From: Dicyema japonicum
Taxonomy: Eukaryota; Animalia; Dicyemida
Reading direction: 5' to 3'
Assembly (NCBI GenBank): GCA_011109175.1
Contig: RDEW01000069.1
Span: 117,758-181,757, forward strand
DNA: 64,000 bases
Part shown: piece by piece, positions 1,213 through 33,830 of the stretch
Numbering within the stretch: the first letter of the stretch is position 1
How the letters are laid out: each line of letters begins with the position of its first letter
The notes under the pieces: generated by a model
What the model saw: only the letters and a program-made list of their open reading frames with translations
Databases searched by the model: none
Told to the model about the DNA's origin: nothing
Position numbers and translations under genes: made by a program

Positions 1213-1217
1213 ACTCC

Positions 1218-11613: not shown

Positions 11614-13153
11614 ATGTCAGGACGTGGTAAAGGTGGAAAAGGAGGAAAGTCAGTGCAAAGCGATTTAAAAAGATCCTGATCGATAACGTAAGAAGTTTGG
11701 ACGATTATGAGGACATCTCACGTGTGGTCTGCGACACAGCGGCCCACGTGGTACAAGGACTCTTCGAAAATAAGCCCTCTATTGGATTATATTTTAGAGG
11801 AGTCCGAGGAGTCGAGAAGCTCAGAAGGGTCGTTCGCGACTCGATCCTTCTGTCGTTCAGAGTCAATATGGGGATCGATGGCAGGGCTGCTTTCCACACT
11901 GCAGCGGACATCCCCACACAGCAAGCGGTTGATCAAGCTGTGCCTGCACCGAGGAGGATGGAGGTTGAGAGCAAGACTCAGCCTCTTGAAATGAATCAAG
12001 GACCGAGAACCGAGGGCAGGGCTGAATCCGTCACACAGCCGCGGTCCAACAGGCTGTGCCTGCCCTCGACGAAGGAAGACAAGAGGACCGTCTCCCAATG
12101 ACTGTAGGCTGGACTACAGTAGGGAGAAAGAGGAAGTCTGCGGTTTCTGCCAAACCGCAGAACGTGCGTGATTCGGGTCCAGAAACCGCAAAGTGCCCTA
12201 AAAAGCATTTTGCAGGCTCGAATCAATCCAGAGCGCACGTGCCGAAAGAAAAGAAGAAAGAACAGGTATTCGGAGGACTAACTACACTAGTTCGGCTAGA
12301 GGTGCCGAAGATGGGAGTGGTTAAACTCCTAAGTGGCATAGGTACTCTGGCTACCTATGCGAAAGGAAGGATCGTCAGACGAGGAGAATCCCACTTGTTG
12401 GTGGGATTCAGAAATGACGTGGACGCCTCAGCTTTTGAAGCTGAGGTGAATAAGAAGGTTCCTTTTGGGCCCGGGGCACATAACATGTCTCGGGTCATCC
12501 CCAAGGTACACGACTCGATTGTACTAGTCTTCGGAGTCCTCTGGACTTTGTTGATGAGGATGTACTCGAGTACATCAAAAAGGACTACCCCACGGCGCAC
12601 AAGATCGAGCGCTTCAAGAGTGGGAGTCAGAGATTAAGGACTCTCAAGGTCTGGATCAGGTCCGGAGCAGAAGCTGAAAGGATCTGCCTTGAGAAGTTAA
12701 AGATAGGTTACTTTAGATTTGGTGTGGCCCGAGAGCGACCGGTAGCAATCCAGTGCTACAGATGCCAGGGATTCGGCCACACCAGCTCCCGCTGCACTTA
12801 ATAAAGAGAAGTGCCTAAATTGCGGGGGTCCACATTCGCGGAAGGCTTGCCAAACAAGTGGCAAGTCTCTCAAGTGCGTGAACTGTGGCGCAAAAGGACA
12901 CAGGGCGAGCCATACCAAGTGCCCCCTGTATCAGGAGGCGACGGAGAAGGTACCACAGGGGAGAAGGCAGGCGCCCTCCTCTGGAATGGTCAGTGATGTA
13001 GGCACTATCCATCGGATGGTGAGTAACTATTGCAATGCCACTGGGGCTTCGCTCCAAACGGCACTTAGGGATATCGCGTTATCTCATAGGTTAAATAATG
13101 CGTCGAAGGGATGCTCAACATCGTCTTCGAAACAGGAGGACTTTAGAATATGA
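11614..13153 (+). CDS. H4(1-25)::LINE ORF1 fusion with several single-base indels
   Basis: Junction ATC GAT AAC | GTA AGA AGT TTG GAC GAT is in frame ([20 protein letters not shown]). Confidence 0.7.
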
Positions 13154-13303
13154 CGAAGACTTTTATAAAACGAAGGAGGCACGGGGAAGACGAATGTGAT
13201 GGCACGAAAACGCTGCCGCAAGGCGGTGAAAGGGCCTTTAGTTAGTTCTTCCCTAACTTAACATTTGTTTTTTTGCCTAATAAAGATTTTTCCGTTTTTC
13301 TTC
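11688..13303 (+). mobile_element. ORF1-only family A derivative in the H4 5' end
   Basis: ORF1 with 3 CCHC knuckles joined directly to the family A 3' UTR, AATAAA and TTCCG tail; no ORF2. Confidence 0.92.
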
Positions 13304-13312
13304 CGCAAATCA

Positions 13313-13620
13313 ATGTCTGGACGTGGAAAGGTGGAAAAGGAGGAAAGTCAGGTGCAAAGCGATTTAAAAAGATCCTGATCGATAACATTCAGGGGATCAC
13401 AAAGCCTGCAATTAGGAGACTGTGTCGTAGAGGAGGTGTGAGAAGGATCTCAGGCAAAATTTATGAGGAGACAAGATGTGTCCTCAGGATCTTTATTGAG
13501 AGAACTATAAGAGATTGCATTTCCTATTGTGAACACGCTAAAAGAAAAACTGTGATTGCTATGGATGTGGTCTATGCCTTGAAGAGACAAGGGAGAACAA
13601 TATATGGATTTGGTGGATGA
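13313..13620 (+). CDS. H4: Histone H4 regenerated downstream of the insertion (1-nt indel near start)
   Basis: Full H4 sequence restarting at cgcaaa-caATG. Confidence 0.88.
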
Positions 13621-13997
13621 CATATCTTTTTAATAAAAAAATAAATTTTTATCTATATTAAATTCTGAGATATAATTTAAGTCGTTTAGGGTTACAAGAA
13701 GCATTTCTATAAATAGTGTTTTTTATGAATTCTAATTACACAGTGATAATTTTAAAATTTTGTAAAATAGCTTTTTCTACTTTAATGTGGTAAAATTTTG
13801 CTTAAAATAATGCTTTGATAATTTTAAAAAAAATTGTGTTTTGATAATTTTCCAAATTGTGCTTCCGGAAAAAAATTACTTGCTCTCTCGTATTGTTGCA
13901 AAATTGCGTGTGCTTCGCGAAAAATTTAAGCGTACGTTAGTATTAGTACATCGAAAAAAAATCGATAATTTTAATTTCATTCATTCGTCGATAAATA

Positions 13998-14405
13998 ATG
14001 GCACGAACAAAACAAACTGCTAGAAAATCAACTGGAGCAAAAGTTCCAAGGAAACAGCTTTCTGCTAAATCTGCACGCAAGTCAGTTTCTCAATTGGGTG
14101 GTGTAAAGAAACCACATCGCTTTCGTCCTGGTGTCGTGGCAATGAGGGAGATCAGAAGATATCAAAAGAGTACTGACCTTCTATTGCGAAAGACACCGTT
14201 CCAAAGGGTTGTTAGAGAAGCAGCACAATTTATGAAGACAGATTTACGTTTCCAATCATCGGCCATTGTTGCTCTTCAGGAGGCTGCAGAGACTTATTTG
14301 GTCGGGATTTTGAGATAGTATTTGTGTGCAATACATGGAAAACGAGTAACAATAATGCCACAGGATATGCACCTAGCAAGGAGAATTCGTGGTGAAAAAA
14401 CATAA
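13998..14405 (+). CDS. H3: Histone H3 with probable sequencing indels near 14310
   Basis: Matches H3 consensus apart from three single-base deletions. Confidence 0.88.
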
Positions 14406-15671
14406 CTTTTCGATAAATCAAATAAATATAATTTGTCTCTTTTTTTTAAATTAACCTAATCCCGACAAAATTTAGGAAAAAGTAAATAATCCTATCCTTA
14501 TAGCCTAATTGATAATGTTTTTCGAGATGCAATGTCGTTTTAAATTGTTAATTCACGGGAATTTCTAGTCATACGCAGTTTCTATCAACTAGCTAAAAAT
14601 ACCTATATAAAACCCAACTTCAATGTAACAAACTAAACAAATAAATCTCAAGTACAAAAATAAGACAAATTTTTAATTTTGACACAGTTTAAAAAACAAA
14701 AAAACTATATCATTTTTTTTAATGTAACAAACTAACCATATAAAATCTGCCTTTAATTACATAAATAAGACAAATTTTTAATTTTAACGCTGTTAAATAA
14801 CAATTTGACTATTATATAAAAATTAAATTAATCGCTGTCGAAAAATTGGGGTCAAAAATCCAGGTTTTTGCGGCTGATTGATCTCAAACCAAGTTCATTC
14901 AACGCGTCTTGCTTTTGCGCGTTAAAATGTGAAATCAGATTGAAAATTGGACGCACGTGGGCGGAGATTTGATAATTGATTATTTTTTAGTTTTTAGAAA
15001 TTAAATTTGTCTATTATTCTTGTTTATATAAGCCTTGTTAACCTTTAACTAAATTAATTTATTTTTTTGATTACCTAAATGCTACATTCTAAGATAGTTC
15101 TAGATATTGACTTAGTCAGCTAGGCTTACAGTTGGGTAGTAATAATGTAACTTTTTTCTAAATAACTCTTGTAAGTGACTGATTATTCTATTTAAGAGAC
15201 TGAAACGGTATATAGAGGGGAGCAACTTTCTACGACCTAATCAATTTGGATTCCGTCTGGGAAGATCATGTGGAGATTTTATCCACTCACTAAACTACGA
15301 AATTATAAATACATTGGAGAAGAAATTGATTTGTCTAATTAAATTTGTCTATTATTCTTGTTTATGTAAGACTTGTTTTCCTTTTAAACTAATTTTTTTT
15401 GATTATCCAATTGCTACATTCCAAGATAGTTCTTGACTTGTCAGCTAGGGTTACAGTTGGTTAGTAATAATGTAACTTTTTGCAATATAACTTTTGTAAG
15501 TAATTAAGTTTCAATTTTATTTATAGGGTTTTACTCCTTTGGAGTAATTTTCCGATAGATATCTTGACAAAATAAAGGCACATGTCTTATTACTAAGGGA
15601 TCAAATGGATTTCTGGCTAGCAAGTACTATTGATAAAGTCAATTAAAGTAAAGGTTTATTTAATAAAATTG

Positions 15672-16034
15672 TTAAGTGGATGCTGGTTTTGCGGGCTCAG
15701 CACTTTTGCGACAGATGTATCTTCCGCAAGAGATTATTGCATTTTGGGTAAGTTCTTTTAATTCGTCATCGGCATTGATTGCGACAGACAGGTGACAAGG
15801 TTTGATCCTTCGCTTTGCAGCCTTGAGTGCAGTATTACCACAAAGTTCCAGCACTTCAGCACATAGATACTCCATTACAGCTCCAACGTAGATGGCAGCA
15901 CCAACTGCAACTCGCATTCTGGTCTCACTTCTCAAGCATCTATGAATTCGACCAACTGGAAATTGCAAGCCTGCTCTAACTGATTTGCTTTTCGCTTTTG
16001 TACGTACTTTTCCACCTTTGCCGCGAGTAGACAT
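15672..16034 (-). CDS. H2A: Histone H2A
   Basis: Intact 120-aa ORF. Confidence 0.95.
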   Translation of the reverse strand: MSTRGKGGKVRTKAKSKSVRAGLQFPVGRIHRCLRSETRMRVAVGAAIYVGAVMEYLCAEVLELCGNTALKAAKRRIKPCHLSVAINADDELKELTQNAIISCGRYICRKSAEPAKPAST

Positions 16035-16205
16035 TTTATTGAAAATTTTGAATTTTTTCGTACTTATGTTTTTAAATTGTGCTTCCGGAAAAAACTTTTA
16101 AATTAGCATAAGAAAATCAATACTTTCTAAAGTTTATTCTGGAAGCACAATTTGAAAACATAAGTACGAAAAAATTCAAAATTTTTCAAAATTTAGATTT
16201 AGACT

Positions 16206-16574
16206 ATGGTTCAAAAAGTTAGCACAAAAGGATCTAAACGGGCTGCAGTTAAAGTTAGTAGCACAACACGTGCCTTACGAAAAAAGAAAAAGCGATCCCA
16301 AAACTATCATTTGTACATTCTGAGGATTTTGAAATCTGTCCACACTGATTTGGGGATGTCAAAGAAAGCTATGATGGCTATGGACAGCTTTACTTTTGAC
16401 ATTTACGAAAAAATCAAGAACGAAGCTTGCAATTTAGTTCAGCATAATAGCAAAGCTACTATCACATCAAGAGAAATTCAAACAGCAGTACGCTTGATTT
16501 TGCCTGGAGAATTGGCAAAGCATGCTATTACCGAAGGGGCAAAGGCGGTCACCAAGTATACCAATACTAAGTGA
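16206..16574 (+). CDS. H2B: Histone H2B
   Basis: Intact 122-aa ORF. Confidence 0.97.
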
Positions 16575-16868
16575 TTTTTACTTGATATAATAAAGAAAAC
16601 TTGTTTTCTAACATTTTTTTCCTTACATAAAAATAGCCCACGTGTCATAATCTTAACAAAAGAACGTTTTTTATTAAATTTAACGTAATAAGAACGTTTT
16701 TTATTATTTTTAACGCTATTTAAAAAGTCCGTTTTAGTGTGTTTTCCAATTTTCACTTTAATATCGATTTGTGCTTCCGTGAAAAACTTTTAATATTATC
16801 GATTTGTGCTTCGGCGAAAAACTTTTTGCGTCGTCAATTTATAAACGCCAAATTTGGAGCGCAAAGCA

Positions 16869-18542
16869 ATGTCTGGACGTGGTAAAGGTGGAAAAGGAGG
16901 AAAGTCAGGTGCAAAGCGATTCAAAAAGATCCTGATCGATAACATTCAGGGATCACAACACATTCCGTACGAAATCTTGAGGATTATCAGGACATCTCAC
17001 GTGTGGTCTGTGATACAGCGGCCCACGTGGTACAAGGACTCTTCGAAAAATAAGCCCTCTATTGGATTATATTTTAGAGGAGTCCGAGGAGTAGAGAAGC
17101 TCAGAAGGGTCGTTCGCGACTCGATCCTTCTGTCGTTCAGAGTCAATATGGGGATCGATGGCAGGGCTGCTTTCCACACTGCAGCGGACATCCCACACAG
17201 CAAGCGGTTGATCAAGCTGTGCCTGCACCAAGGAGGATGGAGGTTGAGAGCAAGACTCAGCCTCCTGTAATGGATCAAAGGACCGAGGAAAAACATCCCA
17301 GCAAAGCTAGCGGTGAACAAGCTGTGCCTGGGACAAGGAGGATGGAGGTTGAGGGCAAGACTCAGCCTCTTGAAATGAATCAAGGACGAGAACCGAGGGC
17401 AAGGGCTGAATCCGTCACACAGCCAAGCGGTCCAAACAGGCTGTGCCTGCCCTCGACGAAGTGCGACAAGAGGACCATCTCCCAATGACTGTAGGCTGGA
17501 CTACAGTAGGGAGAAAGAGGAAGTCTGCGGTTTCTGCCAAACCGCAGAACGTGCGTGATTCGGGTCCAGAAAACCGCAAAGTGCCCTAAAAGCATTTTTG
17601 CAGGCTCGAATCAATCCAGAGCGCACGTGCCGAAAGAAAAGAAGAAAGAACAGGTATTCGGAGGACTAACTACACTAGTTCGGCTAGAGGTGCCGAAGAT
17701 GGGAGTGGTTAAACTCCTAAGTGGCATAGGTACTCTGGCTACCTATGCGAAAGAAGGATCGTCAGACGAGGAGAATCCCACTTGTTGGTGGGATTCAGAA
17801 ATGACGTGGACGCCTCAGCTTTTGAAGCTGAGGTGAATAAGAAGGTTCCTTTTGGGCCCGGGGCACATAACATGTCTCGGGTCATCCCCAAGGTACACGA
17901 CTCGATTGTACTAGTCTTCCGGAGTCCCTCTGGACTTTGTTGATGAGGATGTACTCGGAGTACATCAAAAGGACTACCCCACGGCGCACAAGATCGAGCG
18001 CTTCAAGAGTGGAGTCAGAGACTAAGGACTCTCAAGGTCTGGATCAGGTCCGGAGCGGAAGCTGAGAGGATCTGCCTTGAGAAGTTTAAGATAGGTTACT
18101 TTAGATTTGGTGTGGCCCGAGAGCGACCGGTAGCAATCCAGTGCTACAGATGCCAGGGATTCGGCCACACCAGCTCCCGCTGCACTTATAAAGAGAAGTG
18201 CCTAAATTGCGGGGTCCACATTCGCGAAGGCTTGCCAAACAAGTGGCAAGTCTCTTCAAGTGCGTGAACTGTGGCGCAGAAGGACACAGGGCGAGCCATA
18301 CCAAGTGCCCCCCTGTATCAGGAGGCGACGGAGAAGGTACCACAGGGGAGAAGGCAGGCGCCCTCCTCTGGAATGGCCAGTGATGTAGGCACTATCCATC
18401 GGATGGTGAGTAACTATTGCAATGCCACTGGGGCTTCGCTCCAAACGGCACTTAGGGATATCGCGTTTATCTCATAGGTTAAATAATGCGTCGAAGGGAT
18501 GCTCAACAATCGTCTTCGAAACAGGAGGACTTTAGAATATGA
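16869..18542 (+). CDS. H4(1-30)::LINE ORF1 fusion with many single-base indels
   Basis: Same junction as 32002 (gatcacaa|cacattccgtacgaaatc); in frame if one homopolymer G is restored. Confidence 0.65.
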
Positions 18543-18693
18543 CGAAGACTTTTATAAAACGAAGGAGGCACGGGGAAGACGAATGTGATGGCACGAAACG
18601 CTGCCGCAAGGCGGTGAAAGGGCCTTTAGTTAGTTCTTCCCTGATTACTTAACATTTGTTTTTTGCCTAATAAAGATTTTTCCGTTCCGATCC
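16959..18693 (+). mobile_element. ORF1-only family A derivative in the H4 5' end
   Basis: ORF1 plus 3' UTR plus ttccgttccga tail, followed by cgcaaagcaATG of H4. Confidence 0.92.
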
Positions 18694-18702
18694 CGCAAAG
18701 CA

Positions 18703-19011
18703 ATGTCAGGACGTGGGAAAGGTGGAAAAGGAGGAAAGTCAGGTGCAAAGCGATTCAAAAAGATCCTGATCGATAACATTCAGGGGATCACAAAGCCTGC
18801 AATTAGGAGACTGTGTCGTAGAGGAGGTGTGAGAAGGATCTCAGGCAAAATTTATGAGGAGACAAGATGTGTCCTCAGGATCTTTATTGAGAGAACTATA
18901 AGAGATTGCATTTCCTATTGTGAACACGCTAAAAGAAAAACTGTGATTGCTATGGATGTGGTCTATGCCTTGAAGAGACAAGGGAGAACAATATATGGAT
19001 TTGGTGGATGA
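18703..19011 (+). CDS. H4: Histone H4 regenerated downstream of the insertion
   Basis: Intact 102-aa ORF. Confidence 0.95.
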
Positions 19012-19385
19012 CTTTTTTTTAAATAAAAAAAATAAATTTTTATCTATATTAAATTCTGAGATATAAATTAAGTCGTTTTAGGGTTACAAGAAGCTTTCTA
19101 TAAATAGTGTTTTTTATGAATTCTAATTACACAGTGATAATTTTAAAATTTTGTAAAATAGCTTTTTTCTACTTTAATGTGGTAAAATTTTGCGTAAATA
19201 ATGCATTTGATAATTTTAAAAAAAATTGTGTTTTGATAATTTTCCAAATTGTGCTTCCGGAAAAAAATTACTTGCTCTCTCGTATTGTTGCAAAATTGCG
19301 TGTGCTTCCGCGAAAAATTTAAGCGTACGTTAGTATTAATACATCGCAGAAAAAAATCGATAATTTTCATTTTCATCGATAAATA

Positions 19386-19796
19386 ATGGCACGAACAAAA
19401 CAAACTGCTAGAAAATCAACTGGAGCAAAAGTTCCAAGGAAACAGCTTTCTGCTAAATCTGCACGCAAGTCAGTTTCTCAATTGGGTGGTGTAAAGAAAC
19501 CACATCGCTTTCGTCCTGGTGTCGTGGCAATGAGGGAGATCAGAAGATATCAAAAGAGTACTGACCTTCTATTGCGAAAGACACCGTTCCAAAGGGTTGT
19601 TAGAGAAGCAGCACAATTTATGAAGACAGATTTACGTTTCCAATCATCGGCCATTGTTGCTCTTCAGGAGGCTGCAGAGACTTATTTGGTCGGGATTTTT
19701 GAGGATAGTAATTTGTGTGCAATACATGGAAAACGAGTAACAATAATGCCACAGGATATGCACCTAGCAAGGAGAATTCGTGGTGAAAAAACATAA
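19386..19796 (+). CDS. H3: Histone H3
   Basis: Intact 136-aa ORF. Confidence 0.97.
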
Positions 19797-21062
19797 CTTT
19801 TCGATAAATCAAATAAATATAATTTGTCTCTTTTTTTTAAATTAACCTAATCCCGACAAAATTTAAGAAAAATTAAAAGTCCAATCCTTTCGCCTAATTG
19901 ATAATGTTTTTCGAGACGCAATGTCGTTTTAAATTGTTAATTCACGGAATTTCTAATCATACGCAGTTTCTATCAACTAGCTAAAAATAGCCTATATAAA
20001 ACCCAACTTCAATGTAACAAACTAACCAAATAAATCTCAAGTACAAAAATAAGACAAATTTTTAATTTTGAGACTGTTTAAAAAACAAAAAAACTATATC
20101 ATTTTGGTTTAATGTAACAAACTAACCATATAAAATCTCCCTTTAATTACATAAATAAGACAAATTTTTAATTTTAACGCTGTTAAATAACAATTTGATT
20201 ATAATATAAAAATTAAATAAATCGCTGTCGAAAAATTGGGGTCAAAAATCCAGGTTTTTGCGGCTGATTGATCTCAAACCAAGTTCATTCAACGCGTCTT
20301 GCTTTTGCGCGTTAAAATGTGAAATCAGATTGATAATTGGACGCACGTGGGCGGAGATTTGATAATTGATTAATTTTAGTTTTTAGAAATTAAATTTGTC
20401 TATTATTCTTGTTTATGTAAGCCTTGTTAACCTTTAACTAAATTAATTTATTTTTTTGATTACCTAAATGCTCATTCTAAGATAGTTCTAGATATTGACT
20501 TAGTCAGCTAGGCTTACAGTTGGGTAGTATTAATGTAACTTTTTTCTAAATAACTTTTGTAAGTGACTGATTATTCTATTTAAGAGACTGAAACGGTATA
20601 TAGAGGGGAGCAACTTTCTACGACCTAATCAATTTGGATTCCGTCTGGGAAGATCATGTGGAGATTGTATCCACTCACTAAACTACGAAATTATAAATAC
20701 ATTGGAGAAGAAATTGATTTGTCTAATTAAATTTGTCTACTATTCTTGTTTATGTAAGTCTTGTTATCCTTTAACTAAATTAATTTAGTTTTTTGATTAT
20801 CCAATTGCTACAAGATAGTTCTTGACTTGTCAGCTAGGGTTACAGTTGGTTAGTAATAATGTAACTTTTTGCAATATAACTTTTGTAAGTAATTAAGTTT
20901 CAATTTTATTTATAGGGTTTTACTCCTTTGGATAATTTTCCGATAGATATCTTGACAAAATAAAGGCAGATGTCTTATTACTTAGGGATCAAATAGATTT
21001 CTGGCTAGCAAGTACTATATTGATAAGAGTCAATTAAAGTAAAGGTTTATTTAATAAAATTG

Positions 21063-21425
21063 TTAAGTGGATGCTGGTTTTGCGGGCTCAGCACTTTTGC
21101 GACAGATGTATCTTCCGCAAGAGATTATTGCATTTTGGGTAAGTTCTTTTAATTCGTCATCGGCATTGATTGCGACAGACAGGTGACAAGGTTTGATCCT
21201 TCGCTTTGCAGCCTTGAGTGCAGTATTACCACAAAGTTCCAGCACTTCAGCACATAGATACTCCATTACAGCTCCAACGTAGATGGCAGCACCAACTGCA
21301 ACTCGCATTCTGGTCTCACTTCTCAAGCATCTATGAATTCGACCAACTGGAAATTGCAAGCCTGCTCTAACTGATTTGCTTTTCGCTTTTGTACGTACTT
21401 TTCCACCTTTGCCGCGAGTAGACAT
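21063..21425 (-). CDS. H2A: Histone H2A
   Basis: Intact 120-aa ORF. Confidence 0.95.
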   Translation of the reverse strand: MSTRGKGGKVRTKAKSKSVRAGLQFPVGRIHRCLRSETRMRVAVGAAIYVGAVMEYLCAEVLELCGNTALKAAKRRIKPCHLSVAINADDELKELTQNAIISCGRYICRKSAEPAKPAST

Positions 21426-22557: not shown

Positions 22558-22904
22558 CTTTTTTTAATAAAAAAATAAATTTTTATCTATATTAAATTCT
22601 GAGATATAAATTAAGTCGTTTTAGGGTTACAAGAAGCTTTCTATAAATAGTGTTTTTTATGAATTCTAAATACACAGTGATAATTTTAAAATTTTGTAAA
22701 ATAGCTTTTTTCTACTTTAATGTGGTAAAATTTTGCTTAAAATAATGCTTTGATAATTTTAAAAAAAATTGTGTTTTGATAATTTTCCAAATTGTGCTTC
22801 CGGAAAAAAATTACTTGCTCTCTCGTATTGTTGCAAAATTGCGTGTGCTTCCGCGAAAAATTTAAGCGTACGTTAGTATTAATACAAAATTTTTGATTTA
22901 GACT

Positions 22905-24574
22905 ATGGTTCAAAAAGTTAGCACTAAAGGATCTAAACGGGCTGCAGTTAAAGTTAGTAGCACAACAAGTTCCGTAAGAAGTTTGGACGATTACCAGGAC
23001 ATCTCACGTGTGGTCTGTGATACAGCGGCCCACGTGGTAAATGGACTCTTCGAAAATAAGCCCTCTATTGGATTATATTTTAGAGGAGTCCGAGGAGTCG
23101 AGAAGCTCAGAAGGGTCGTTCGCGACTCGATCCTTCTGTCGTTCAGAGTCAATATGGGGATCGATGGCAGGGCTGCTTTCCACGCTGCAGCGGACATCCC
23201 CACACAGCAAGCGGTTGATCAAGCTGTGCCTGCACCGAGGAGGATGGAGGTTGAGAGCAAGACTCAGCCTCCTATAATGGATCAAGGGACATGGAAAAAG
23301 ACCAGGCCTACTTCATACACATCAGAGGACATCCCCACACAGCAAGCGGTTGAACAAGCTGTGCCTGCACCGAGGAGGATGGAGGTTGAGAGCAAGACTC
23401 AGCCTCTTGAAATGAATCAAGGACCGAGAACCGAGGGCAGGGCTGAATCCGTCACACAGCCAGCGGTCCAACAGGCTGTGCCTGCCCTCGACGAAGTGCG
23501 ACAAGAGGACCATCTCCCAATGACTGTAGGCTGGACTACAGTAGGGAGAAAGAGGAAGTCTGCGGTTTCTGCCAAACCGCAGAACGTGCGTGATTCGGGT
23601 CCAGAAACCGCAAAGTGCCCTAAAAAGCATTTTGCAGGCTCGAATCAATCCAGAGCGCACGTGCCGAAAGAAAAGAAGAAAGAACAGGTATTCGGAGGAC
23701 TAACTACACTAGTTCGGCTAGAGGTGCCGAAGATGGGAGTGGTTAAACTCCTAAGTGGCATAGGTACACTGGCTACCTATGCGAAAGGAAGGATCGTCAG
23801 ACGAGGAGAATCCCACTTGTTGGTGGGATTCAGAAATGACGTGGACGCCTCAGCTTTTGAAGCTGAGGTGAATAAGAAGGTTCCTTTTGGGCCCGGGGCA
23901 CATAACATGTCTCGGGTCATCCCCAAGGTACACGACTCGATTGTACTAGTCTTCGGAGTCCCTCTGGACTTTGTTGATGAGGATGTACTCGAGTACATCA
24001 AAAAGGACTACCCACGGCGCACAAGATCGAGCGCTTCAAGAGTGGGAGTCAGAGACTAAGGACTCTCAAGGTCTGGATCAGGTCCGGAGCAGAAGCTGAA
24101 AGGATCTGCCTTGAGAAGTTAAAGATAGGTTACTTTAGATTTGGTGTGGCCCGAGAGCGACCGGTAGCAATCCAGTGCTACAGATGCCAGGGATTCGGCC
24201 ACACCAGCTCCCGCTGCACTTATAAAGAGAAGTGCCTAAATTGCGGGGGTCCACATTCGCGGAAGACTTGCCAAACAAGTGGCAAGTCTCTCAAGTGCGT
24301 GAACTGTGGCGCGGAGGGACACAGGGCGAGCCATACCAAGTGCCCCCTGTATCAGGAGGCGACGGAGAAGGTACCACAGGGGAGAAGGCAGGCGCCCTCC
24401 TCTGGAGTGGTCAGTGATGTAGGCACTATCCATCGGATGGTGAGTAACTATTGCAATGCCACTGGGGCTTCGCTCCAAACGGCACTTAGGGATATAGCGT
24501 TATCTCATAGGTTAAATAATGCGTCGAAGGGATGCTCAACATCGTCTTCGGAACAGGAGGACTTTAGAATATGA
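22905..24574 (+). CDS. H2B(1-21)::LINE ORF1 fusion, ORF1-only type, one indel near 24012
   Basis: [32 protein letters not shown]...; C-terminus ...[23 protein letters not shown]. Confidence 0.82.
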
Positions 24575-24730
24575 CGAAGACTTTTATAAAACGAAGGAGG
24601 CACGGGGAAGACGAATGTGATGGCACGAAAACGCTGCCGCAAGGCGGTGAAAGGGCCTTTAGTTAGTTCTTCCCTGATTACTTAACATTTGTTTTTTTGC
24701 CTAATAAAGATTTTTCCGTTCCGTTCCGTT
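22968..24730 (+). mobile_element. ORF1-only family A derivative preceded by an H2B leader (22886-22967)
   Basis: Ends AATAAAGATTTTTCCGTTCCGTTCCGTT followed by a second H2B leader. Confidence 0.92.
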
Positions 24731-24735
24731 AGACT

Positions 24736-26364
24736 ATGGTTCAAAAAGTTAGCACAAAAGGATCTAAACGGGCTGCAGTTAAAGTTAGTAGCACAAAAAG
24801 TTCCGTAAGAAGTTTGGACGATTACCAGGACATCTCACGTGTGGTCTGTGATACAGCGGCCCACGTGGTAAATGGACTCTTCGAAAATAAGCCCTCTATT
24901 GGATTATATTTTAGAGGAGTCCGAGGAGTCGAGAAGCTCAGAAGGGTCGTTCGCGACTCGATCCTTCTGTCCTTCCGAATAAACATGGGGATCGATGGCA
25001 GGGCTGCTTTCCACGCTGCAGCGGACATCCCCACACAGCAAGCGGTTGATCAAGCTGTGCCTGCACCGAGGAGGATGGAGGTTGAGAGCAAGACTCAGCC
25101 TCCTATAATGGATCAAGGGAAATGGAAAAAGACCAGGCCTACTTCATACACATCAGAGGACATCCCCGCACAGCTAGCGGTTGAACAAGCTGTGCCTGGG
25201 ACGAGGAGGATGGAGGTTGAGAGCAAGACTCAGCCTCTTGAAATGAATCAAGGACCGAGAACAGAGGGCAGGGTTGAATCCGTCACACAGCCAGCGGTCC
25301 AACAGGCTGTGCCTGCCCTCGACGAAGGAAAACAAGAGGACCGTCTCCCGATGACTGTAGGCTGGACTACAGTAGGGAGAAAGAGGAAGTCTGCGGTTTC
25401 TGCCAAACCGCAGAACGTGCGTGATTCGGGTCCAGAAACCGCAAAGTGCCCTAAAAAGCATTTTGCAGGCTCGAATCAATCCAGAGCGCACGTGCCGAAA
25501 GAAAAGAAGAAAGAACAGGTATTCGGAGGGCTAACTACACTAGTTCGGCTAGAGGTGCCGAAGATGGGAGTGGTTAAACTCCTAAGTGGCATAAGTAGTC
25601 TGGCTACCTATGCGAAAGGAAGGGTCGTCAGACGAGGAGAATCCCACTTGTTGGTGGGATTCAGAAATGACGTGGACGCCTCAGCTTTTGAAGCTGAGGT
25701 GAATAAGAAGGTTCCTTTGGGCCCGGGGCACATAACATGTCTCGGGGTCATCCCCAAGGTACACGACTCGATTGTACTAGTCTTCGGAGTCCCTCTGGAC
25801 TTTGTTGATGAGGATGTACTCGAGTACATCAAAAAGGACTACCCCACGGCGCACAAGATCGAGCGCTTCAAGAGTGGGAGTCAGAGACTAAGGACTCTCA
25901 AGGTCTGGATCAGGTCCGGAGCAGAAGCTGAGAGGATCTGCCTTGAGAAGTTAAAGATAGGTTACTTTAGATTTGGTGTGGCCCGAGAGCGACCGGTAGC
26001 AATCCAGTGCTACAGATGCCAGGGATTCGGCCACACCAGCTCCCGCTGCACTTATAAAGAGAAGTGCCTAAATTGCGGGGGTCCACATTCACGGAAGGCC
26101 TGTCAATCCAGAGTCAGGTCTCTCAAGTGCGTGAACTGTGGCTTGGAGGGACACAGGGCGAGCCATACCAAGTGCCCCCTGTATCAGGAGGCGACGGAGA
26201 AGGTACCACAGGGGAGAAGGCAGGCGCCCTCCTCTGGAGTGGTCAGTGATGTAAGCGCTGTCCACCGCGTGGTAAGTCGATACTGTAGCAGCACAGGTTC
26301 AACGTTCCCTAATGCGCTTAGGGACATTGCGCTCTGCGATAGGAAGGTAAGTGCGGCGAAGTGA
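24736..26364 (+). CDS. H2B(1-20)::LINE ORF1 fusion protein, 542 aa, intact (Gag-like, three CCHC zinc knuckles)
   Basis: H2B N-terminus in frame with ORF1; [43 protein letters not shown]. Confidence 0.9.
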   Translation: MVQKVSTKGSKRAAVKVSSTKSSVRSLDDYQDISRVVCDTAAHVVNGLFENKPSIGLYFRGVRGVEKLRRVVRDSILLSFRINMGIDGRAAFHAAADIPTQQAVDQAVPAPRRMEVESKTQPPIMDQGKWKKTRPTSYTSEDIPAQLAVEQAVPGTRRMEVESKTQPLEMNQGPRTEGRVESVTQPAVQQAVPALDEGKQEDRLPMTVGWTTVGRKRKSAVSAKPQNVRDSGPETAKCPKKHFAGSNQSRAHVPKEKKKEQVFGGLTTLVRLEVPKMGVVKLLSGISSLATYAKGRVVRRGESHLLVGFRNDVDASAFEAEVNKKVPLGPGHITCLGVIPKVHDSIVLVFGVPLDFVDEDVLEYIKKDYPTAHKIERFKSGSQRLRTLKVWIRSGAEAERICLEKLKIGYFRFGVARERPVAIQCYRCQGFGHTSSRCTYKEKCLNCGGPHSRKACQSRVRSLKCVNCGLEGHRASHTKCPLYQEATEKVPQGRRQAPSSGVVSDVSAVHRVVSRYCSSTGSTFPNALRDIALCDRKVSAAK

Positions 26365-29074
26365 TGTTACGCATCATTTCAGTTAATGTTAGGTCCCTCC
26401 GGAGAAGAAGGAAGGCCATCGAGGATCTTCTGGACTCTTTGGAGGTGGACATCTTGGTCCTTAACGAGACCAAGAGTAAGGATACGGCTGCTGCAGGCTT
26501 TAAAGGCTATACTAGTTGTCATCTCTTGTGGAATGACACACATAGAGGTTCGGGCACTAGTATCTATTGGAGGACGAGTCTAGCAGCAGTCGTCCAAGGT
26601 ATTGCAAATTGTCCTCATTGCGAGCTAATATTATTACGAATCAGGTTATCTGGCTTTAGCGTTGTTATAGGGGCAATGTATGCCAAGCAGTTGTGGTTGT
26701 GTAAGGACCACATTAAAACTGTATTTGACATTCATCCCCATTGCGTTATTTTTGGTGATCTGAATGCTAAGCATTCAGATTTTGGCTGTTTTGTTAATAA
26801 TAGGGCTGGATCAGCACTCCGGGAATTAGCTTGGAATCTTGGGCTCTCAGTCACTACATCGACGGACCCCAATCACAAAGATACACGAGGAGGAGAGGAC
26901 TTCTTGGGTATGGCCGTAGCCTCCCCTTCATTAATTGGTATGCTCTCTGTACCTCGTGTTCTTAGGGACATCGGAAGCGATCACCGTCCCCTACTCACTG
27001 AGCTTCACGAACCTGTTCGACCTCAGGCCCCAATTGGCTATGACTTGGGCTCTGGCACTTGGGATAACCTGGAGTCGTTCATGGATAGAAAACTCCCTTC
27101 TCTCAAAGGGCAAGTTTGTAGTGAAGCGGACGTGGAGGAATTGGATGCCACCCTGGGTGGTATCCTCGAGGAATACATGCGGACTAACTTCCGGTTACGT
27201 CCGCAAGGTGGAGGCTCCGCACGAATTCCAGGCCTGATTTTAAGTAAGATAACACTTAGAAAGAGGTACCTGCGGTTCAAAGCGAGGAGCACGTATGAAG
27301 AGAACCGGATCTTCTACCAGAAGAAGGTAAACACCTTACGAAGGGAAATCCGGAAGGCGCTTGTTGACTATCAGAGCAACAAATGGAGGAGGGCCTGCGA
27401 GAGGGTGAACCCCGCATGGCCGGACTTCTGGAGTCAGCTGAAGCGCCTGTCGGGCAGAGGGGAAGAGTCATCTGCGCGTACCCTGTGTCGTGCGGACGGT
27501 TCTAAAACCTCTGACCCGACTGAAATAGCGAGCATCTTTGCAGGTAGCTTTAGGGCAGTTACTGCAGTTCGACCAGAGAACTTTGTCGAGTTAACAGCTC
27601 GACAAAGTATAGAGGACGTCATCTCTGCGGAGAGACGGAAGTTGAGCCACTCTCGGGAGATCCCGAAGGTGGCATGCATCACCGAGGAGGAGGTCCGGGC
27701 CGCGATAAGTAAATCGAAGAACAACGCACCGGGCCAAGACAAGATCCCCATGGCCCTTTTCAAGAAAGGACCTGGAAGTCTCGTGAACACCTTGGTAAGA
27801 TTGTACAACGGTAGTACAGGTTGGGTTACGTTCCTAGGCGTTGGAAGGAAGCGGAACTGGTTTTTGTAAGGAAACCAGGAAAACCTCCTGAAGACCCTAG
27901 TAGCTACCGCCCTATAAGCTTGTTACCTGCCGTTGCTAAAATCTTAGAGAGAGTGATACACCAGAGGTTAACCCAGGAATGCATAATAAAAGACACCCTC
28001 TCGGACCTTCAGATGGGATTCCGTGAGGGGCGTTCCTGTGGGGACTGCCTCTGGAGGTTGAGCTCTCAGATTCGTGAAAGGAGCAAGAAGCAATGCACAG
28101 CCGCGTTGTTCCTGGATGTGGAGAGGGCGTTCGACTCGGTCTGGCATGACGGCCTCCGTTGCGCCCTCGCAGAAGGAGGAATATCTCTGGAGCTAAGGAG
28201 CTGGTTATCAAGCTTCTTAGAGGATCGGATGAACTATGTAAGGCATAAAGGTTGCCGATCTAGTTTGTTTAGATCTAACCGGGGAGTTCCACAAGGGTCG
28301 GTTTTGAGCCCCACCCTTTTCAACGTTTACATGTCTACACTTCCCCACCCAGCCAATGTGAGGACGGAGATGGCTATCTATGCGGACGACATAGTACTCT
28401 GGGATCACTCGTGGAAACCAGATGTAGCGTGTCGGAGGATTCAAGTAGCTGTCAATGAAATCATACGCTGGTGTGGGAGCAGAGGACTTAGGCTGAGACC
28501 TGAGAAATGTAAGTTATTAGTTTTTGGCCGCCCTAAGCGGTCTAATAATTTAATACCTAGAGTAACCATCTATGGGGTACCTATAGAGGTTACTGGGCGG
28601 ACGAGCTACCTTGGAGTGACATTCAACTCCAAGTGTAGTTTCCAGGAGCACACCGCCCTCGTTAAGAGGCGGGCTGTGCAAAGATTAGGAGCGTTGAGGG
28701 CTTTTCAGCTGAGTCGCGATGCCTGGGCCAAAGTGTTCAACGCCATGGTGCTGCCTATGCTCACCTATGGTGCGCACTCCTGGTATTGTAGTGAGGAACG
28801 CGAAAAGTGCCTCACCAACTTGAGGAAGGTTCGGCGGCGGGCAATACGGTATTCTATAGGATTGTCTTATAGAGCGCCGCTGCCCGAAAGAGGATATCCG
28901 ATTTCAGGACCCGAGGAAGTGATTAAAAAGATCTTAAAAAATTAAAGAAGGAGGCACGGGGAAGACGAATGGATGCACGAAAACGCTGCCGCAAGGCGGT
29001 GAAAGGGCCTTAGTTAGTTCTTCCCTATTACTTAACATTTGTTTTTTGCCTAATAAAGATTTTTCCTTCCTTTC
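24797..29074 (+). mobile_element. Near-intact autonomous family A LINE (ORF1 + ORF2 + 3' UTR), probably I/Jockey/R1-group, 3' end 27 nt upstream of the H3 ATG
   Basis: Two ORFs, AATAAA and ttccttcc tail, then aatcgataattttc of the H3 leader. Confidence 0.95.
26364..28945 (+). CDS. LINE ORF2: APE endonuclease + reverse transcriptase, ~860 aa, with single-base indels near 27815 and 28900
   Basis: ISVNVRSL, LNETK, GDLNAKH, SDH; APGQDKI, YRPISLL, FLDVERAFDSV, GVPQGSVLSPTLF, YADD, YLGV. Confidence 0.92.
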
Positions 29075-29101
29075 AATCGATAATTTTCATTTTCATTAAT
29101 A

Positions 29102-29512
29102 ATGGCACGAACAAAACAAACTGCTAGAAAATCAACTGGAGCAAAAGTTCCAAGGAAACAGCTTTCTGCTAAATCTGCACGCAAGTCAGTTTCTCAATTG
29201 GGTGGTGTAAAGAAACCACATCGCTTTCGTCCTGGTGTCGTGGCAATGAGGGAGATCAGAAGATATCAAAAGAGTACTGACCTTCTATTGCGAAAGACAC
29301 CGTTCCAAAGGGTTGTTAGAGAAGCAGCACAATTTATGAAGACAGATTTACGTTTCCAATCATCGGCCATTGTTGCTCTTCAGGAGGCTGCAGAGACTTA
29401 TTTGGTCGGGATTTTTGAGGATAGTAATTTGTGTGCAATACATGGAAAACGAGTAACAATAATGCCACAGGATATGCACCTAGCAAGGAGAATTCGTGGT
29501 GAAAAAACATAA
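29102..29512 (+). CDS. H3: Histone H3
   Basis: Intact 136-aa ORF. Confidence 0.97.
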
Positions 29513-30784
29513 CTTTTCGATAAATCAAATAAATATAATTTGTCTCTTTTTTTTAAATTAACCTAATCCCGACAAAATTTAGGAAAAATAAAAATCCAAT
29601 CCTTATAGCCTAATTGATAATGTTTTTCGAGACGCAATGTCGTTTTAAATTGTTAATTCACGGGAATTTCTAATCATACGCAGTTTCTATCAACTAGCTA
29701 AAAATAGCCTATATAAACCCAACTTCAATGTAACAAACTAACCAAATAAATCTCAAGTACAAAAATAAGACAAATTTTTAATTTTGACACTGTTTAAAAA
29801 ACAAAAAAACTATATCATTTTCTTTTAATGTAACAAACTAACCATATAAAATCTCCCTTTAATTACAAAAATAAGACAAATTTTTAATTTTGACACTGTT
29901 AAATAACAATTTGAATATTATATATAAAATTAAATTAATCGCTGTCGAAAAATTGGGGTCAAAAATCCAGGTTTTTGCGGCTGATTGATCTCAAACCAAG
30001 TTCATTCCACGCGTCTTGCTTTTAGGCGTTAAAATATGAAATCAGATTAAAAATTGGACGCACGTTTGCGGAGATTTGATAATTGATTATTTTTTAGTTT
30101 TTATAAATTAAATTTGTCTATTATTCTTGTTTATGTAAGCCTTGTTAACCTTTAACTAAATTAATTTATTTTTTTGATTACCTAAATGCTACATTCTAAG
30201 ATAGTTCTAGATATTGACTTAGTCGGCTAGGCTTACAGTTGGTTAGTAATAATGTAACTTTTTTCAAAATAACTTTTGTAAGTGACTGATTATTGTATTT
30301 AAGAGACTGAATCGGTATATAGAGGGGAGCAACTTTCTACGACCTAATCAATTTGGATTCCGTCCGGGAAGATCATGTGGAGATTGTATCCACTCACTAA
30401 ACTACGAAATTATAAATACATTGGAGAAGAAATTAATTTGTCTAATTAAATTTGTCTACTATTCTTGTTTATGTAAGTCTTGTTATCCTTTAACTAAATT
30501 AATTTTTTTTTGATTATCCAATTGCTACATTCCAGATAGTTCTTGACTTGTCAGCTAGGGTTACAGTTGGTTAGTAATAATGTAACTTTTTGCAAGATAA
30601 CTTTTGTAAGTAATTAAGTTTCAATTTTATTAATAGGGTTTTACTCCTTTGGAGTAATTTTCCGATAGATATCTTGACAAAATAAAGGCAGATGTCTTAT
30701 TACTTAGGGATCAAATGATTTCTGGCTAGCAAGTACTATAGTTGATAAAAGTCAATTAAAGTAAAGGTTTATTTAATAAAATTG

Positions 30785-31147
30785 TTAAGTGGATGCTGGT
30801 TTTGCGGGCTCAGCACTTTTGCGACAGATGTATCTTCCGCAAGAGATTATTGCATTTTGGGTAAGTTCTTTTAATTCGTCATCGGCATTGATTGCGACAG
30901 ACAGGTGACAAGGTTTGATCCTTCGCTTTGCAGCCTTGAGTGCAGTATTACCACAAAGTTCCAGCACTTCAGCACATAGATACTCCATTACAGCTCCAAC
31001 GTAGATGGCAGCACCAACTGCAACTCGCATTCTGGTCTCACTTCTCAAGCATCTATGAATTCGACCAACTGGAAATTGCAAGCCTGCTCTAACTGATTTG
31101 CTTTTCGCTTTTGTACGTACTTTTCCACCTTTGCCGCGAGTAGACAT
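30785..31147 (-). CDS. H2A: Histone H2A
   Basis: Intact 120-aa ORF. Confidence 0.95.
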   Translation of the reverse strand: MSTRGKGGKVRTKAKSKSVRAGLQFPVGRIHRCLRSETRMRVAVGAAIYVGAVMEYLCAEVLELCGNTALKAAKRRIKPCHLSVAINADDELKELTQNAIISCGRYICRKSAEPAKPAST

Positions 31148-31342
31148 TTTATTGAAAATTTTGAATTTTTTCGTACTTATGTTTTTAAATTGTGCTTCCG
31201 GAAAAAACTTTTAGAATTAGCATAAGAAAATCAATACTTTCTAAAGTTTATTCTGGAAGCACAATTTGAAAACATATAAGTACGAAAAAATTCAAAATTT
31301 TCGATTTCAGACTATTTTGATTTGATTGAATTTTCGAAGACT

Positions 31343-31711
31343 ATGGTTCAAAAAGTGAGTACTAAAGGATCTAAAAGAGCTGCAGTTAAAGTTAGTAGCA
31401 CAACACGTGCCTTACGAAAAAAGAAAAAGCGATCCCAAAACTATCATTTGTACATTCTGAGGATTTTGAAATCTGTCCACACTGATTTGGGGATGTCAAA
31501 GAAAGCTATGATGGCTATGGACAGCTTTACTTTTGACATTTACGAAAAAATCAAGAACGAAGCTTGCAATCTAGTTCAGCATAATAGCAAAGCTACTATC
31601 ACATCAAGAGAAATTCAAACAGCTGTACGTTTGATTTTGCCTGGAGAATTGGCAAAGCATGCAATTACCGAAGGGGCAAAGGCGGTCACCAAGTATACCA
31701 ATACTAAGTGA
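31343..31711 (+). CDS. H2B: Histone H2B
   Basis: Intact 122-aa ORF. Confidence 0.97.
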
Positions 31712-32001
31712 TTTTTACTTGATATAATAAAGAAAACTTGTTTTCTAACATTTTTCTTACATAAAAATAGCTCACGTGTCATAGTCTTAACAAAAGAATG
31801 TTTTTTTATTATTTTAGCGCAATAAGAACGTTTTTTATTATTTTTAACGCTATTTAAAAAGTCCGTTTTAGTGTGTTTTCCAATTTTCACTTTAATATCG
31901 ATTTGTGCTTCCGTGAAAAACTTTTAATATTATCGATTTGTGCTTCGGCGAAAAATTTTTGCGTCGTCAATTTATAAACGCCAAATTTGGAGCGCAAAGC
32001 A

Positions 32002-33675
32002 ATGTCAGGACGTGGTAAAGGTGGAAAAGGAGGAAAGTCAGGTGCAAAGCGATTCAAAAAGATCCTGATCGATAACATTCAGGGGATCACAACACATTCC
32101 GTACGAAATCTTGAGGATTATGAGGACATCTCACGTGTGGTCTGCGACACAGCGGCCCACGTGGTACAAGGACTCTTCGAAAATAAGCCCTCTATTGGAT
32201 TATATTTTAGAGGAGTCCGAGGAGTAGAGAAGCTCAGAAGGGTCGTTTCGCGACTCGATCCTTCTGTCATTCAGAGTTAATATGGGGATCGATGGCAGGG
32301 CTGCTTTCCACACTGCAGCGGACATCCCCACACAGCAAGCGGTTGATCAAGCTGTGCCTGCACCGAGGAGGAGGATGGAGGTTGAGAGCAAGACTCAGCC
32401 TCCTGTAATGGATCCAAGGACCGAGGAAAACATCCCAGCACAGCTAGCGGTTGAACAAGCTGTGCCTGGGACGAGGAGGATGGATGTTGAGAGCAAGACT
32501 CAGCCTCTTGAAAAGAATCAAGGACCGAGAACCGAGGGCAGGGCTGAATCCGTCACACAACCAGCGGTCCAACAGGCTGTGCCTGCCCTCGACGAAGTGC
32601 GACAAGAGGACCATCTCCCGATGACTGTAGGCTGGACTACAGTAGGGAGAAAGAGGAAGTCTGCGGTTTCTGCCAAACCGCAGAACGTGCGTGATTCGGG
32701 TCCAGAAACCGCAAAGTGCCCTAAAAGCATTTTTGCAGGCTCGAATCAATCCAGAGCGCACGTGCCGAAAGAAAAGAAGAAAGAACAGGTATTCGGAGGA
32801 CTAACTACACTAGTTCGGCTAGAGGTGCCGAAGATGGGAGTGGTTAAACTCCTAAGTGGCATAGGTACACTGGCTACCTATGCGAAAGAAGGATCGTCAG
32901 ACGAGGAGAATCCCACTTGTTGGTGGGATTCAGAAATGACGTGGACGCCTCAGCTTTTGAAGCTGAGGTGAATAAGAAGGTTCCTTTTGGGCCCGGGGCA
33001 CATAACATGTCTCGGGTCATCCCCAAGGTACACGACTCGATTGTACTAGTCTTCGGAGTCCCTCTGGACTTTGTTGATGAGGATGTACTCGAGTACATCA
33101 AAAAGGACTACCCCACGGCGCACAAGATCGAGCGCTTCAAGAGTGGGAGTCAGAGACTAAGGACTCTCAAGGTCTGGATCAGGTCCGGAGCGGAAGCTGA
33201 GAGGATCTGCCTTGAGAAGTTAAAGATAGGTTACTTTAGATTTGGTGTGGCCCGAGAGCGACCGGTAGCAATCCAGTGCTACAGATGCCAGGGATTCGGC
33301 CACACCAGCTCCCGCTGCACTTATAAAGAGAAGTGCCTAAATTGCGGGGGTCCACATTCGCGGAAGGCTTGCCAAACAAGTGGCAAGTCTCTCAAATGCG
33401 TGAACTGTGGCGCAGAAGGACACAGGGCGAGCCATACCAAGTGCCCCCTGTATCAGGAGGCGACGGAGAAGGTACCACAGGGGAGAAGGCAGGCGCCCTC
33501 CTCTGGAATGGTCAGTGATGTAGGCACTATCCATCGGATGGTGAGTAACTATTGCAATGCCACTGGGGCTTCGCTCCAAACGGCACTTAGGGATATCGCG
33601 TTATCTCATAGGTTAAATAATGCGTCGAAGGGATGCTCAACATCGTCTTCGAAACAGGAGGACTTTAGAATATGA
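32002..33675 (+). CDS. H4(1-30)::LINE ORF1 fusion with a few single-base indels downstream
   Basis: Open across the junction: MSGRG...[27 protein letters not shown]. Confidence 0.8.
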
Positions 33676-33830
33676 CGAAGACTTTTATAAAACGAAGGAG
33701 GCACGGGGAAGACGAATGTGATGGCACGAAAAACGCTGCGCAAGGCGGTGAAAGGGCCTTTAGTTAGTTCTTCCCTGATTACTTAACATTTGTTTTTTGC
33801 CTAATAAAGATTTTTCCATTCCATTTTTCC
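32093..33830 (+). mobile_element. ORF1-only family A derivative in the H4 5' end
   Basis: ORF1 plus 3' UTR plus ttccattcca tail, followed by H4 upstream sequence from -55. Confidence 0.92.

Follow-up and report, generated by a model that had tools for sequence, protein, structure and literature searches.

Four short retroelement copies (c1 to c4) that retain ORF1 and lack ORF2 lie in the histone gene array of the window, the whole 64,000-nt stretch of Dicyema japonicum DNA analysed here. Together with a fifth copy on another contig (C46), they probably form one non-autonomous, internally deleted lineage of a histone-associated APE/RT non-LTR retrotransposon, whose autonomous partner (A) resides in the same array.

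Architecture of the ORF1-only copies and their autonomous partner

All four copies are on the + strand and 1.6-1.85 kb long, and alignment to A confirms the first-pass annotation in that ORF1 is joined to the A 3' end without ORF2; neither APE nor RT is present. The c1 body occupies 11688-13303 (11614..13303 with its H4 head), the c2 body 16959-18693 (16869..18693 with its H4 head), c3 22883-24727 (H2B leader and codons included) and the c4 body 32093-33826 (32002..33826 with its H4 head). A sixth histone-headed copy on the same strand (37446..37809), with an H4 head and yet another junction, runs into an N gap at 37810-38325 and may be either ORF1-only or full-length. One 135-nt internal repeat unit is absent from c1, and both c2 and c4 carry a deletion of 30-31 nt plus a 1-bp deletion at ORF1 nt 882.

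The diverged ORF1 C-terminus begins at 12995 (c1), 18382 (c2), 24416 (c3) and 33517 (c4), and is followed by an ORF2 remnant of about 10 codons and then by the common deletion junction, ...TTTTATAAAAC|GAAGGAGGCACGGGG, at 13172, 18561, 24593 and 33694, respectively. The terminal 125-135 nt of A, beginning at 28947 in A, stand 3' of this junction. The lineage-specific island covers 24416..24592 (+) in c3 and includes the diverged ORF1 C-terminus, a mutated ORF1 stop/ORF2 start, the ORF2 remnant and the deletion junction; the c3 ORF1 stop codon is 24572-24574. It differs by 23-40% from all A copies and by at most 1.5% among c1 to c4. The 3' module common to c3 (24593..24727, +) and A (28947-29070) is about 99% identical apart from 1-nt indels, and contains an GAAGGAGGCACGGGGAAGACG motif, a CCGC-AAG-GCGG hairpin, AATAAA and a variable short-repeat tail. 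When the 3' end was folded, the hairpin formed, but its energy was no better than that of shuffled sequences (z = -0.93). The ORF1 C-terminal peptides quoted earlier match as given, and the block described as identical (24317-24424 versus 26149-26256) is near-identical, with 107/108 positions matching.

The autonomous element A (24729..29070, +) consists of an H2B head, ORF1 and ORF2, followed by H3 position -36. Its ORF1 (24736-26364, 542 aa) has three CCHC knuckles and the same domains and heads as the c ORF1. ORF2 (26361-28945), with one frameshift near 27821-27869, contains the APE and RT domains, represented by PF03372 and PF14529 (endonuclease) and PF00078 (reverse transcriptase, E = 1.4e-40), and by these predicted domains A is classified as an APE-type non-LTR retrotransposon. 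An Atlas search with the RT of A returned clusters that were generic RT or merely 'jockey-like', with no taxon.

Histone heads are fused in frame to ORF1 in all five copies of the c lineage. The c1 head extends from the H4 ATG at 11614 through codon 25, ending at 11687, and its junction, CTGATCGATAAC|GTAAGAAG, occurs only once in the assembly. In c2, 30 H4 codons plus Thr precede the ORF1-only body, and the H4 head junction of c4 is identical to that of c2. The c3 head comprises about 20 nt of H2B leader and about 21 H2B codons (ATG 22905), and the H2A head of the C46 copy is unique in the assembly, giving four different heads in the lineage: H4 (two junctions), H2B and H2A. At the other end, the c1 tail (...TTTTTCCGTTTTTCTT) and the c2 tail (CCGTTCCGATC) are each followed by H4 position -9, and the c4 tail (CCATTCCATTTTT) by H4 position -59. 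The (CCGTT)n tail of c3, which is located about 45 nt 5' of an H3 ATG, adjoins the H2B head of the autonomous copy at -8.

Recombination with the autonomous element

Divergence between c and A is mosaic: 1-3% at ORF1 nt 1-1200, about 5-6% at nt 1201-1548, 23-40% in the island of about 150 nt, and about 1% in the last 125 nt. Substitution counts follow the same course, with 1/187 at nt 1013-1200, 18-22/345 at nt 1201-1548 and 16/71 at nt 1549-1626; a multiple alignment gave 37/92 at element nt 1549-1640. The 5' head and ORF1 modules group by head type and not by element type, with divergence increasing toward the junction. For example, the c2/c4 head junction was also found in two full-length A copies on contig C35, the 30-31-nt deletion of c2 and c4 is also present in C35b, and the head and 5' part of c3 match the adjacent A (5/261). 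Because head and 5' modules are common pairwise to c and A copies, the c lineage recombines with A, on either side of the small, old junction island, which agrees with the recombination proposed in the first-pass annotation.

Coding state of ORF1 and selection

No c copy has an uninterrupted ORF1; one frame break was found in c3, two in c4, four to five in c1 and more than 10 in c2. The earlier statement that the lineage keeps a coding ORF1 is not confirmed, as every copy has at least one frameshift; assembly indel noise confounds this result. Its C-terminal part, previously described as open, is so in three of the four array copies. The break in c3 is a 1-bp deletion in a C-run near 24010, and c2 has many 1-bp indels. 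The 1-bp deletion at nt 882 common to c2 and c4, in a GG context, is missing in A copies with the same 5' module, so the common source of c2 and c4 was probably already frameshifted. On the other hand, histone coding sequences in the array contain about 1.4 indels per kb, and thus many of the c frameshifts may be assembly errors.

In the c-specific part, comparison of c1, c3 and c4 with C46 revealed 11.5-13.5 synonymous and 19.5-21.5 nonsynonymous changes (about 35 in total), corresponding to a pN/pS of 0.46-0.49 (p 0.015-0.05), and the changes private to c1 to c4 number seven of each class. The dN/dS of the island versus A is about 0.32. Purifying selection on the c ORF1 after the deletion is weakly indicated by these comparisons. 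A dN/dS below 1 can also enter the c lineage from A through recombination. As the c copies owe their in-frame heads in part to A copies, these heads do not count as separate evidence for the c lineage. The description of the lineage as selected is favoured by the pN/pS of about 0.47, a weak signal, and opposed by the decay of the C46 copy and by the frameshift that c2 and c4 have in common.

These data bear on a less likely explanation, in which a deletion derivative moved via the common 3' end only would travel passively, as a SINE-like passenger, its ORF1 being irrelevant and decaying neutrally and the apparent constraint being imported from A. Frameshifts in every c copy, the nt 882 deletion without a counterpart in related A copies, the decay of C46 and the demonstrable exchange of the 5' 1200 nt with A are all in line with such a passenger. 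However, the synonymous excess between the array copies and C46 falls in a c-specific part that could not be imported from known A; the low dN/dS of the island versus A also argues against it, and the indel rate of the array histone genes weakens the argument from frameshifts. A further reading, that the short form is a long-lived, selected Gag-only partner in a HeT-A/TART-like arrangement, with a histone-headed ORF1 protein expressed from S-phase histone promoters and recombination re-equipping the element with the current head, ORF1 and 3' end of A, is unlikely.

One deletion and several integrations

Since c1 to c4 and C46 have one common internal junction, the c lineage goes back to a single, non-recurrent deletion event that left about the first 10 and about the last 13 codons of ORF2. 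Repeated, independent deletions do not account for the copies, given an identical junction to which the diverged island is linked. An assembly artefact was rejected too, the junction being present on a second contig at 91-94% identity. By eye, no clear splice donor or acceptor (GT...AG) was found at the deletion junction in a comparison from which the parental island sequence is missing; splicing is still a possible origin of the deletion.

Independent integration of the lineage took place at least three to four times, once outside any histone locus. Retrotransposition is documented by four head types, differing tails and sites, and a 7-bp duplication at C46. The C46 copy (C46:529094-530922) is decayed, with a stop codon in frame and about 330 nt of inserted foreign sequence. 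It carries the deletion junction of c1 to c4 and is flanked by the target duplication GAAGAAT in a locus with no histone genes nearby. Moreover, its H2A head in a non-histone locus and the H2B head in an H3 promoter provide independent evidence that histone heads travel with the RNA.

It is very unlikely that no short form retrotransposed within the array and that crossing-over or gene conversion spread one copy there, whose junctions later came to differ as the tails slipped and small deletions occurred. In favour of such spread, the array units resemble one another at 95-98%, c2 and c4 have a common head junction and internal indels, and the array holds an example of threefold amplification at 42-59 kb, where a copy lacking both its 5' and 3' ends (42066..44940, +, and again at 49357-52232 and 56587-59458) has identical flanks each time and is a single insertion amplified by a 7.3-kb tandem duplication, unlike the c copies. 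Spread of this kind is contradicted by c1, which combines a different head junction with a c3-like body; by c3, in which an H2B leader lies inside an H3 promoter next to A; by tails that differ at several positions within 15 nt; and by the C46 copy, with its other contig, H2A head and target-site duplication. In addition, c2 and c4 are about 13 per mille apart, whereas the units flanking them upstream are 23 per mille apart and are not mutual closest relatives, that is, not sisters. Flank identity as a test of unit duplication was uninformative because all units are 1.5-3.4% apart. For the pair c2 and c4, a single insertion that unequal crossing-over duplicated and whose tail changed later is still a possible source. 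Of the earlier alternative of one deletion spread only by array homogenisation, the single deletion stands and the exclusive spread by array duplication does not; likewise, the different junctions attributed to the four copies are real for the heads and 3' ends, and the internal junction is the same in all.

Least credible is a HeT-A-like mutualist or domesticated gene, whose histone-headed ORF1 would be selected for histone-locus guiding or host histone-tail RNA binding: in-frame heads in all five copies, the weak purifying selection and the local excess over A in the array speak for it, but there is no division of labour, since A has a complete ORF1 of its own under the same heads, there are several variable copies instead of one conserved locus, the reading frames are broken, and the 275-aa C-terminal part of the c4 ORF1 has no match at E <= 0.001 in a large protein database, while nothing was found in favour of a host function, including the host-useful histone-tail RNA-binding protein previously proposed.

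Proposed mechanism

As an internally deleted lineage of this retrotransposon, the c copies probably belong to a family that integrates about 9-60 nt 5' of histone start codons. ORF1, which has no start of its own, is probably read with the help of a promoter, a leader and N-terminal codons that are borrowed from a histone gene. In a resident copy, this histone promoter would drive c RNA, and the ORF2 protein of A could reverse-transcribe this RNA in trans by recognising the common 3' end. RT template switching or array gene conversion may then keep the c head, ORF1 and 3' modules matched to current A. The c ORF1 was probably translated and constrained through much of the history of the lineage, and the present copies may be partly dead.

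Age and copy number

The c lineage is rare but, from sequence divergence, fairly old, predating the array copies, which is consistent with its earlier description as an old lineage. In the lineage-specific part, the divergence of the C46 copy is about 8%; the deletion junction is also covered by a C279 fragment, at 73% identity, and c-type C-terminus fragments on C235 and C112 show 82-85% identity. The claim that the short form outnumbers the autonomous element holds within the six-unit array (four ORF1-only copies versus one full-length A), but not across the 67.5-Mb assembly, which contains five junction-bearing copies versus at least four full-length close copies of A and about 20 A-type 3' ends.

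Comparison with known systems

To our knowledge, ORF1-only LINE derivatives are known chiefly from mammals (HAL1) and fly telomeres (HeT-A); the c lineage represents such a derivative in a compact animal genome. A LINE family with histone gene 5' ends as its target and with start codons taken from those genes would be the larger novelty; a histone-gene-specific non-LTR retrotransposon was not found in the literature, the coverage of which was incomplete, so that novelty is unproven.

HAL1 (half-L1) of mammals is a non-autonomous LINE derivative that encodes only ORF1p and relies on the ORF2p of its partner (PMC5753468, citing Bao & Jurka 2010). The c lineage is similarly derived from an autonomous LINE with ORF1 kept and ORF2 gone, and its 3' terminal 125 nt, about 99% identical to A, may be recognised by the RT. 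However, the LINE involved is not an L1, as ORF1 has CCHC knuckles and the tail consists of short repeats instead of poly(A); there are five copies versus thousands of HAL1; the c copies have no promoter or start codon of their own, use histone heads and sit at histone gene 5' ends; and their ORF1 may not be intact.

In Drosophila telomeres, the Gag-only element HeT-A and its RT-encoding relatives TART/TAHRE are arranged head to tail in one niche. The short form and A also lie head to tail in one niche, with the Gag-only form locally commoner. In contrast to HeT-A, the c lineage supplies no function missing from A, which carries its own equivalent ORF1; it has no long 3' UTR, its niche is a histone gene array rather than a chromosome end, and targeting by the protein of the short form finds no support here.

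The jockey derivatives wallaby and sancho 2 are internally deleted, trans-mobilised LINE copies, and LINE/SINE pairs with common 3' tails are also known. Like these, the c lineage has lost internal coding sequence and retains both termini, 5' and 3', that are needed for expression and for recognition by the RT. Unlike them, it is old enough to carry an island diverged by 23-40%, on both sides of which recombination with its present partner has renewed the sequence. This old deletion island between two helper-identical flanks illustrates a way for a non-autonomous element to remain matched to its helper.

The histone array and its autonomous element

Over the initial 41 kb of the window, diverged histone genes are arrayed in six tandem units (order H4+, H3+, H2A-, H2B+; period ~3.55 kb), and non-LTR retrotransposon insertions lie among them head-to-tail, all on the same strand. 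One complete autonomous copy, here called A (24729-29070), carries ORF1 (24736-26364; 542 aa, with CCHC knuckles) and ORF2 (26361-28945), which encodes apurinic-like endonuclease and reverse transcriptase domains and has a single frameshift. At the 3' end of A, AATAAA precedes a short, variable tail of repeats in place of poly(A). ORF1 of this family lacks its own start. The array's H2B gene supplies the ~21 first ORF1 codons and a leader of ~8-20 nt in A and in one ORF1-only copy, c3, and H4 or H2A supplies them in other copies; this histone-derived part is referred to as the head. The apparently intact ORF1 of A contains a compensated -1/+1 pair at nt 980 and 1008 (window 25715-25745), because at both positions the other copies are all alike and differ from A, and ~10 codons between them are read unlike those of all eight other copies compared.

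Around the window start (window 1-1217; 8666-9758 of the further stretch L036), an A-type copy that lies across it is interrupted by ~1.2 kb matching nothing else within the window, and ends at 3049 inside ORF2, where histone unit sequence (the H3-H2A stretch) resumes. In two units (31290-31342 and 36740-36787), variable short-repeat inserts (TTTGATTTGATTGAA..., ending ...AGACTATGG) occupy the 40-50 nt directly before the H2B ATG, the point where insertions usually occur, and resemble remnants of element tails. A second histone array (period 3.25 kb) is present at the end of contig C20 (L037, G000:C20:56000-65114), with protein identities to the window array of 95% for H3, 75% for H2B and 71% for H2A; it seems uninvaded, as no LINE ORF1 or RT matches could be found in three of its units.

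Structure, origin and age of the ORF1-only copies

The four ORF1-only copies proposed in the first-pass annotation are present and have a common internal structure: c1 (11688-13303; with its H4 head from 11614), c2 (16959-18693; with its H4 head from 16869), c3 (22883-24727) and c4 (32093-33826; with its H4 head from 32002). Their ORF1 is like that of A to ~nt 1548, beyond which its C-terminal part is strongly diverged. Next come the ORF1 stop/ORF2 start in mutated form and ~10 ORF2 codons, up to the deletion junction (...TTTTATAAAAC joined to GAAGGAGGCACGGGG); from there, the copies match the 3'-terminal 125 nt of A at ~99% identity. The ~100-bp block described as identical between the two ORF1 types proved nearly, not strictly, so (107/108 positions match). 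A sixth headed copy (37446-37809), whose H4 head has a further junction (…ATCACAAG joined to TAACGAAG), is cut by an N gap (37810-38325), past which the sequence picks up again inside H3.

By searching the whole assembly (G000; 67.5 Mb, 377 contigs) with the junction and the island around it, comprising the diverged C-terminus and the ORF2 remnant (query, window 24440-24660), five full-length matches were obtained, the four in the window and C46:529151-529371 (94% identity). The latter copy, c5, has the same junction as c1-c4, an H2A head in frame, a (TTCA)n tail and a 7-bp duplication (GAAGAAT), with no histone genes around it on C46, and is damaged by ~330 nt of inserted foreign sequence and by a stop codon in frame. 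In addition, a C279 fragment shows homology across the junction (73% identity) yet runs into a different 3' UTR, and fragments of the c-type C-terminus occur on C235 and C112 (82-85% identity). Given c5 and these fragments, the architecture predates the present copies, and the short form (the c lineage) has a single origin, older than the array copies.

The old fragments on C235 and C112 (L034 4040-4660; L035 3610-3830) stop abruptly in an AT-rich minisatellite of ~20-30-nt units, beyond which an A-type ORF2 begins, and the two loci look like duplicates of each other. In the 3' flank of c5 (L029 rc ~2000-2040; GAAGAATGTCTA), ATGTCTA is identical to the opening 7 nt of the H2A CDS in its head, which may reflect chance or microhomology at integration.

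Recombination with the autonomous element

Recombination between the two ORF1 types, a check suggested earlier, was found, in that c-type versus A-type distances (substitutions only) form a gradient along the element and the 5' modules sort by head. The distances are 1/187 in ORF1 nt 1013-1200, 18-22/345 in nt 1201-1548 and 16/71 in nt 1549-1626 (pairwise projection), or 37/92 in element nt 1549-1640 (multiple alignment), with near identity in the 3' terminal 125 nt. In the 5' part, the grouping of copies follows the head, not the element type: c3 is nearest to the adjoining A (5/261), and the exact H4 head junction of c2 and c4 is also found in two full-length A copies on C35, one of which has a 31-nt deletion in common with them. 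Moreover, c5 and c3 are 17-28% apart in the 5' part and only 5-9% in the island. These observations show that the short form is an old island of ~170-350 nt with both flanks renewed from the current autonomous element, either through RT template switching or through gene conversion in the array. Such two-sided renewal around an old junction island is its most instructive feature.

Independent integrations and copy number

Four head types are present among c1-c5. The head junction of c1 lies at H4 codon 25 (unique in the assembly), c2 and c4 have a common one at H4 codon 30 plus Thr, the leader of c3 is from H2B, and the H2A junction of c5 is again unique in the assembly. The tails are CCGTTTTTCTT (c1), CCGTTCCGATC (c2), (CCGTT)n (c3), CCATTCCATTTTT (c4) and (TTCA)n (c5), and the 3' sites lie at H4 -9 (c1 and c2), H4 -59 (c4) and -8 of A's H2B head (c3). 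Because their H2B leaders differ in length, c3 and the adjoining A are separate events. c2 and c4 are sister copies: both lack 30 nt, both lack 1 bp at nt 882, and both have a compensated -1/+1 pair (nt 717/725). Their upstream flanking units are 23 per mille apart, versus 15.5-20.7 for other pairs, and not mutually closest, and the elements themselves differ by ~13 per mille; two insertions are mildly favoured over one unit duplication. The number of separate integrations is thus at least three to four, so the short form is mobilised; the ORF2 protein of A would be the obvious helper, given the shared 3' end.

Unlike the c copies, three truncated A copies at 42-59 kb (5' cut from ORF1 nt ~1400, 3' cut between GAAAGGG and TTTCTAC) have identical flanks and represent one event amplified by segmental tandem duplication; the 7.3-kb unit occurs as three tandem repeats at 41089-59458, outside the histone array. 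Right after the last of them, a 341-aa open frame with reverse-transcriptase-like motifs (59971-60996, - strand) represents a different retroelement.

The claim that the short form outnumbers the autonomous element is true only inside this small array, where a c copy occupies 4 of 6 H4 positions, because five junction-bearing c copies in the assembly compare with at least four full-length close A copies (the window, C35 twice and C13), besides many truncated copies and ~20 A-type 3' ends.

Coding state of ORF1 and selection

By projecting the copies onto A's coordinates (for counting only), an uninterrupted ORF1 was found in none of the four window copies: frameshifts number one in c3 (1 bp deleted within a C-run), two in c4, four to five in c1 and over ten in c2. 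The assembly is noisy, with ~1.4 indels per kb in the array's histone coding sequences and the compensated pair in A's own ORF1. The nt-882 deletion is probably real, because c2 and c4 both have it, its context is GG, and it is missing from the C35 A copies with the same 5' module. Substitutions gave dN/dS values of 0.24-0.45 in every comparison, although within the 5' 1200 nt A could be the source of such values. For the c-specific nt 1201-1626, array copies and c5 differ by 11.5-13.5 synonymous and 19.5-21.5 nonsynonymous changes (pN/pS 0.46-0.49, p 0.015-0.05); among the private changes of c1-c4, synonymous and nonsynonymous ones number 7 each. Of the proposal that the lineage keeps a coding ORF1, past constraint for part of the time since the deletion is thus weakly suggested, short of proof that the present copies function. 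Nothing supports the suggested host function, and no relatives of the ORF1 C-terminal part were found in a large protein database search.

Comparison with known systems

The short form works in the same way as HAL1 (PMC5753468). Together, the short form and A resemble the HeT-A/TART arrangement. There is no division of labour here, because the partner A carries its own full ORF1.
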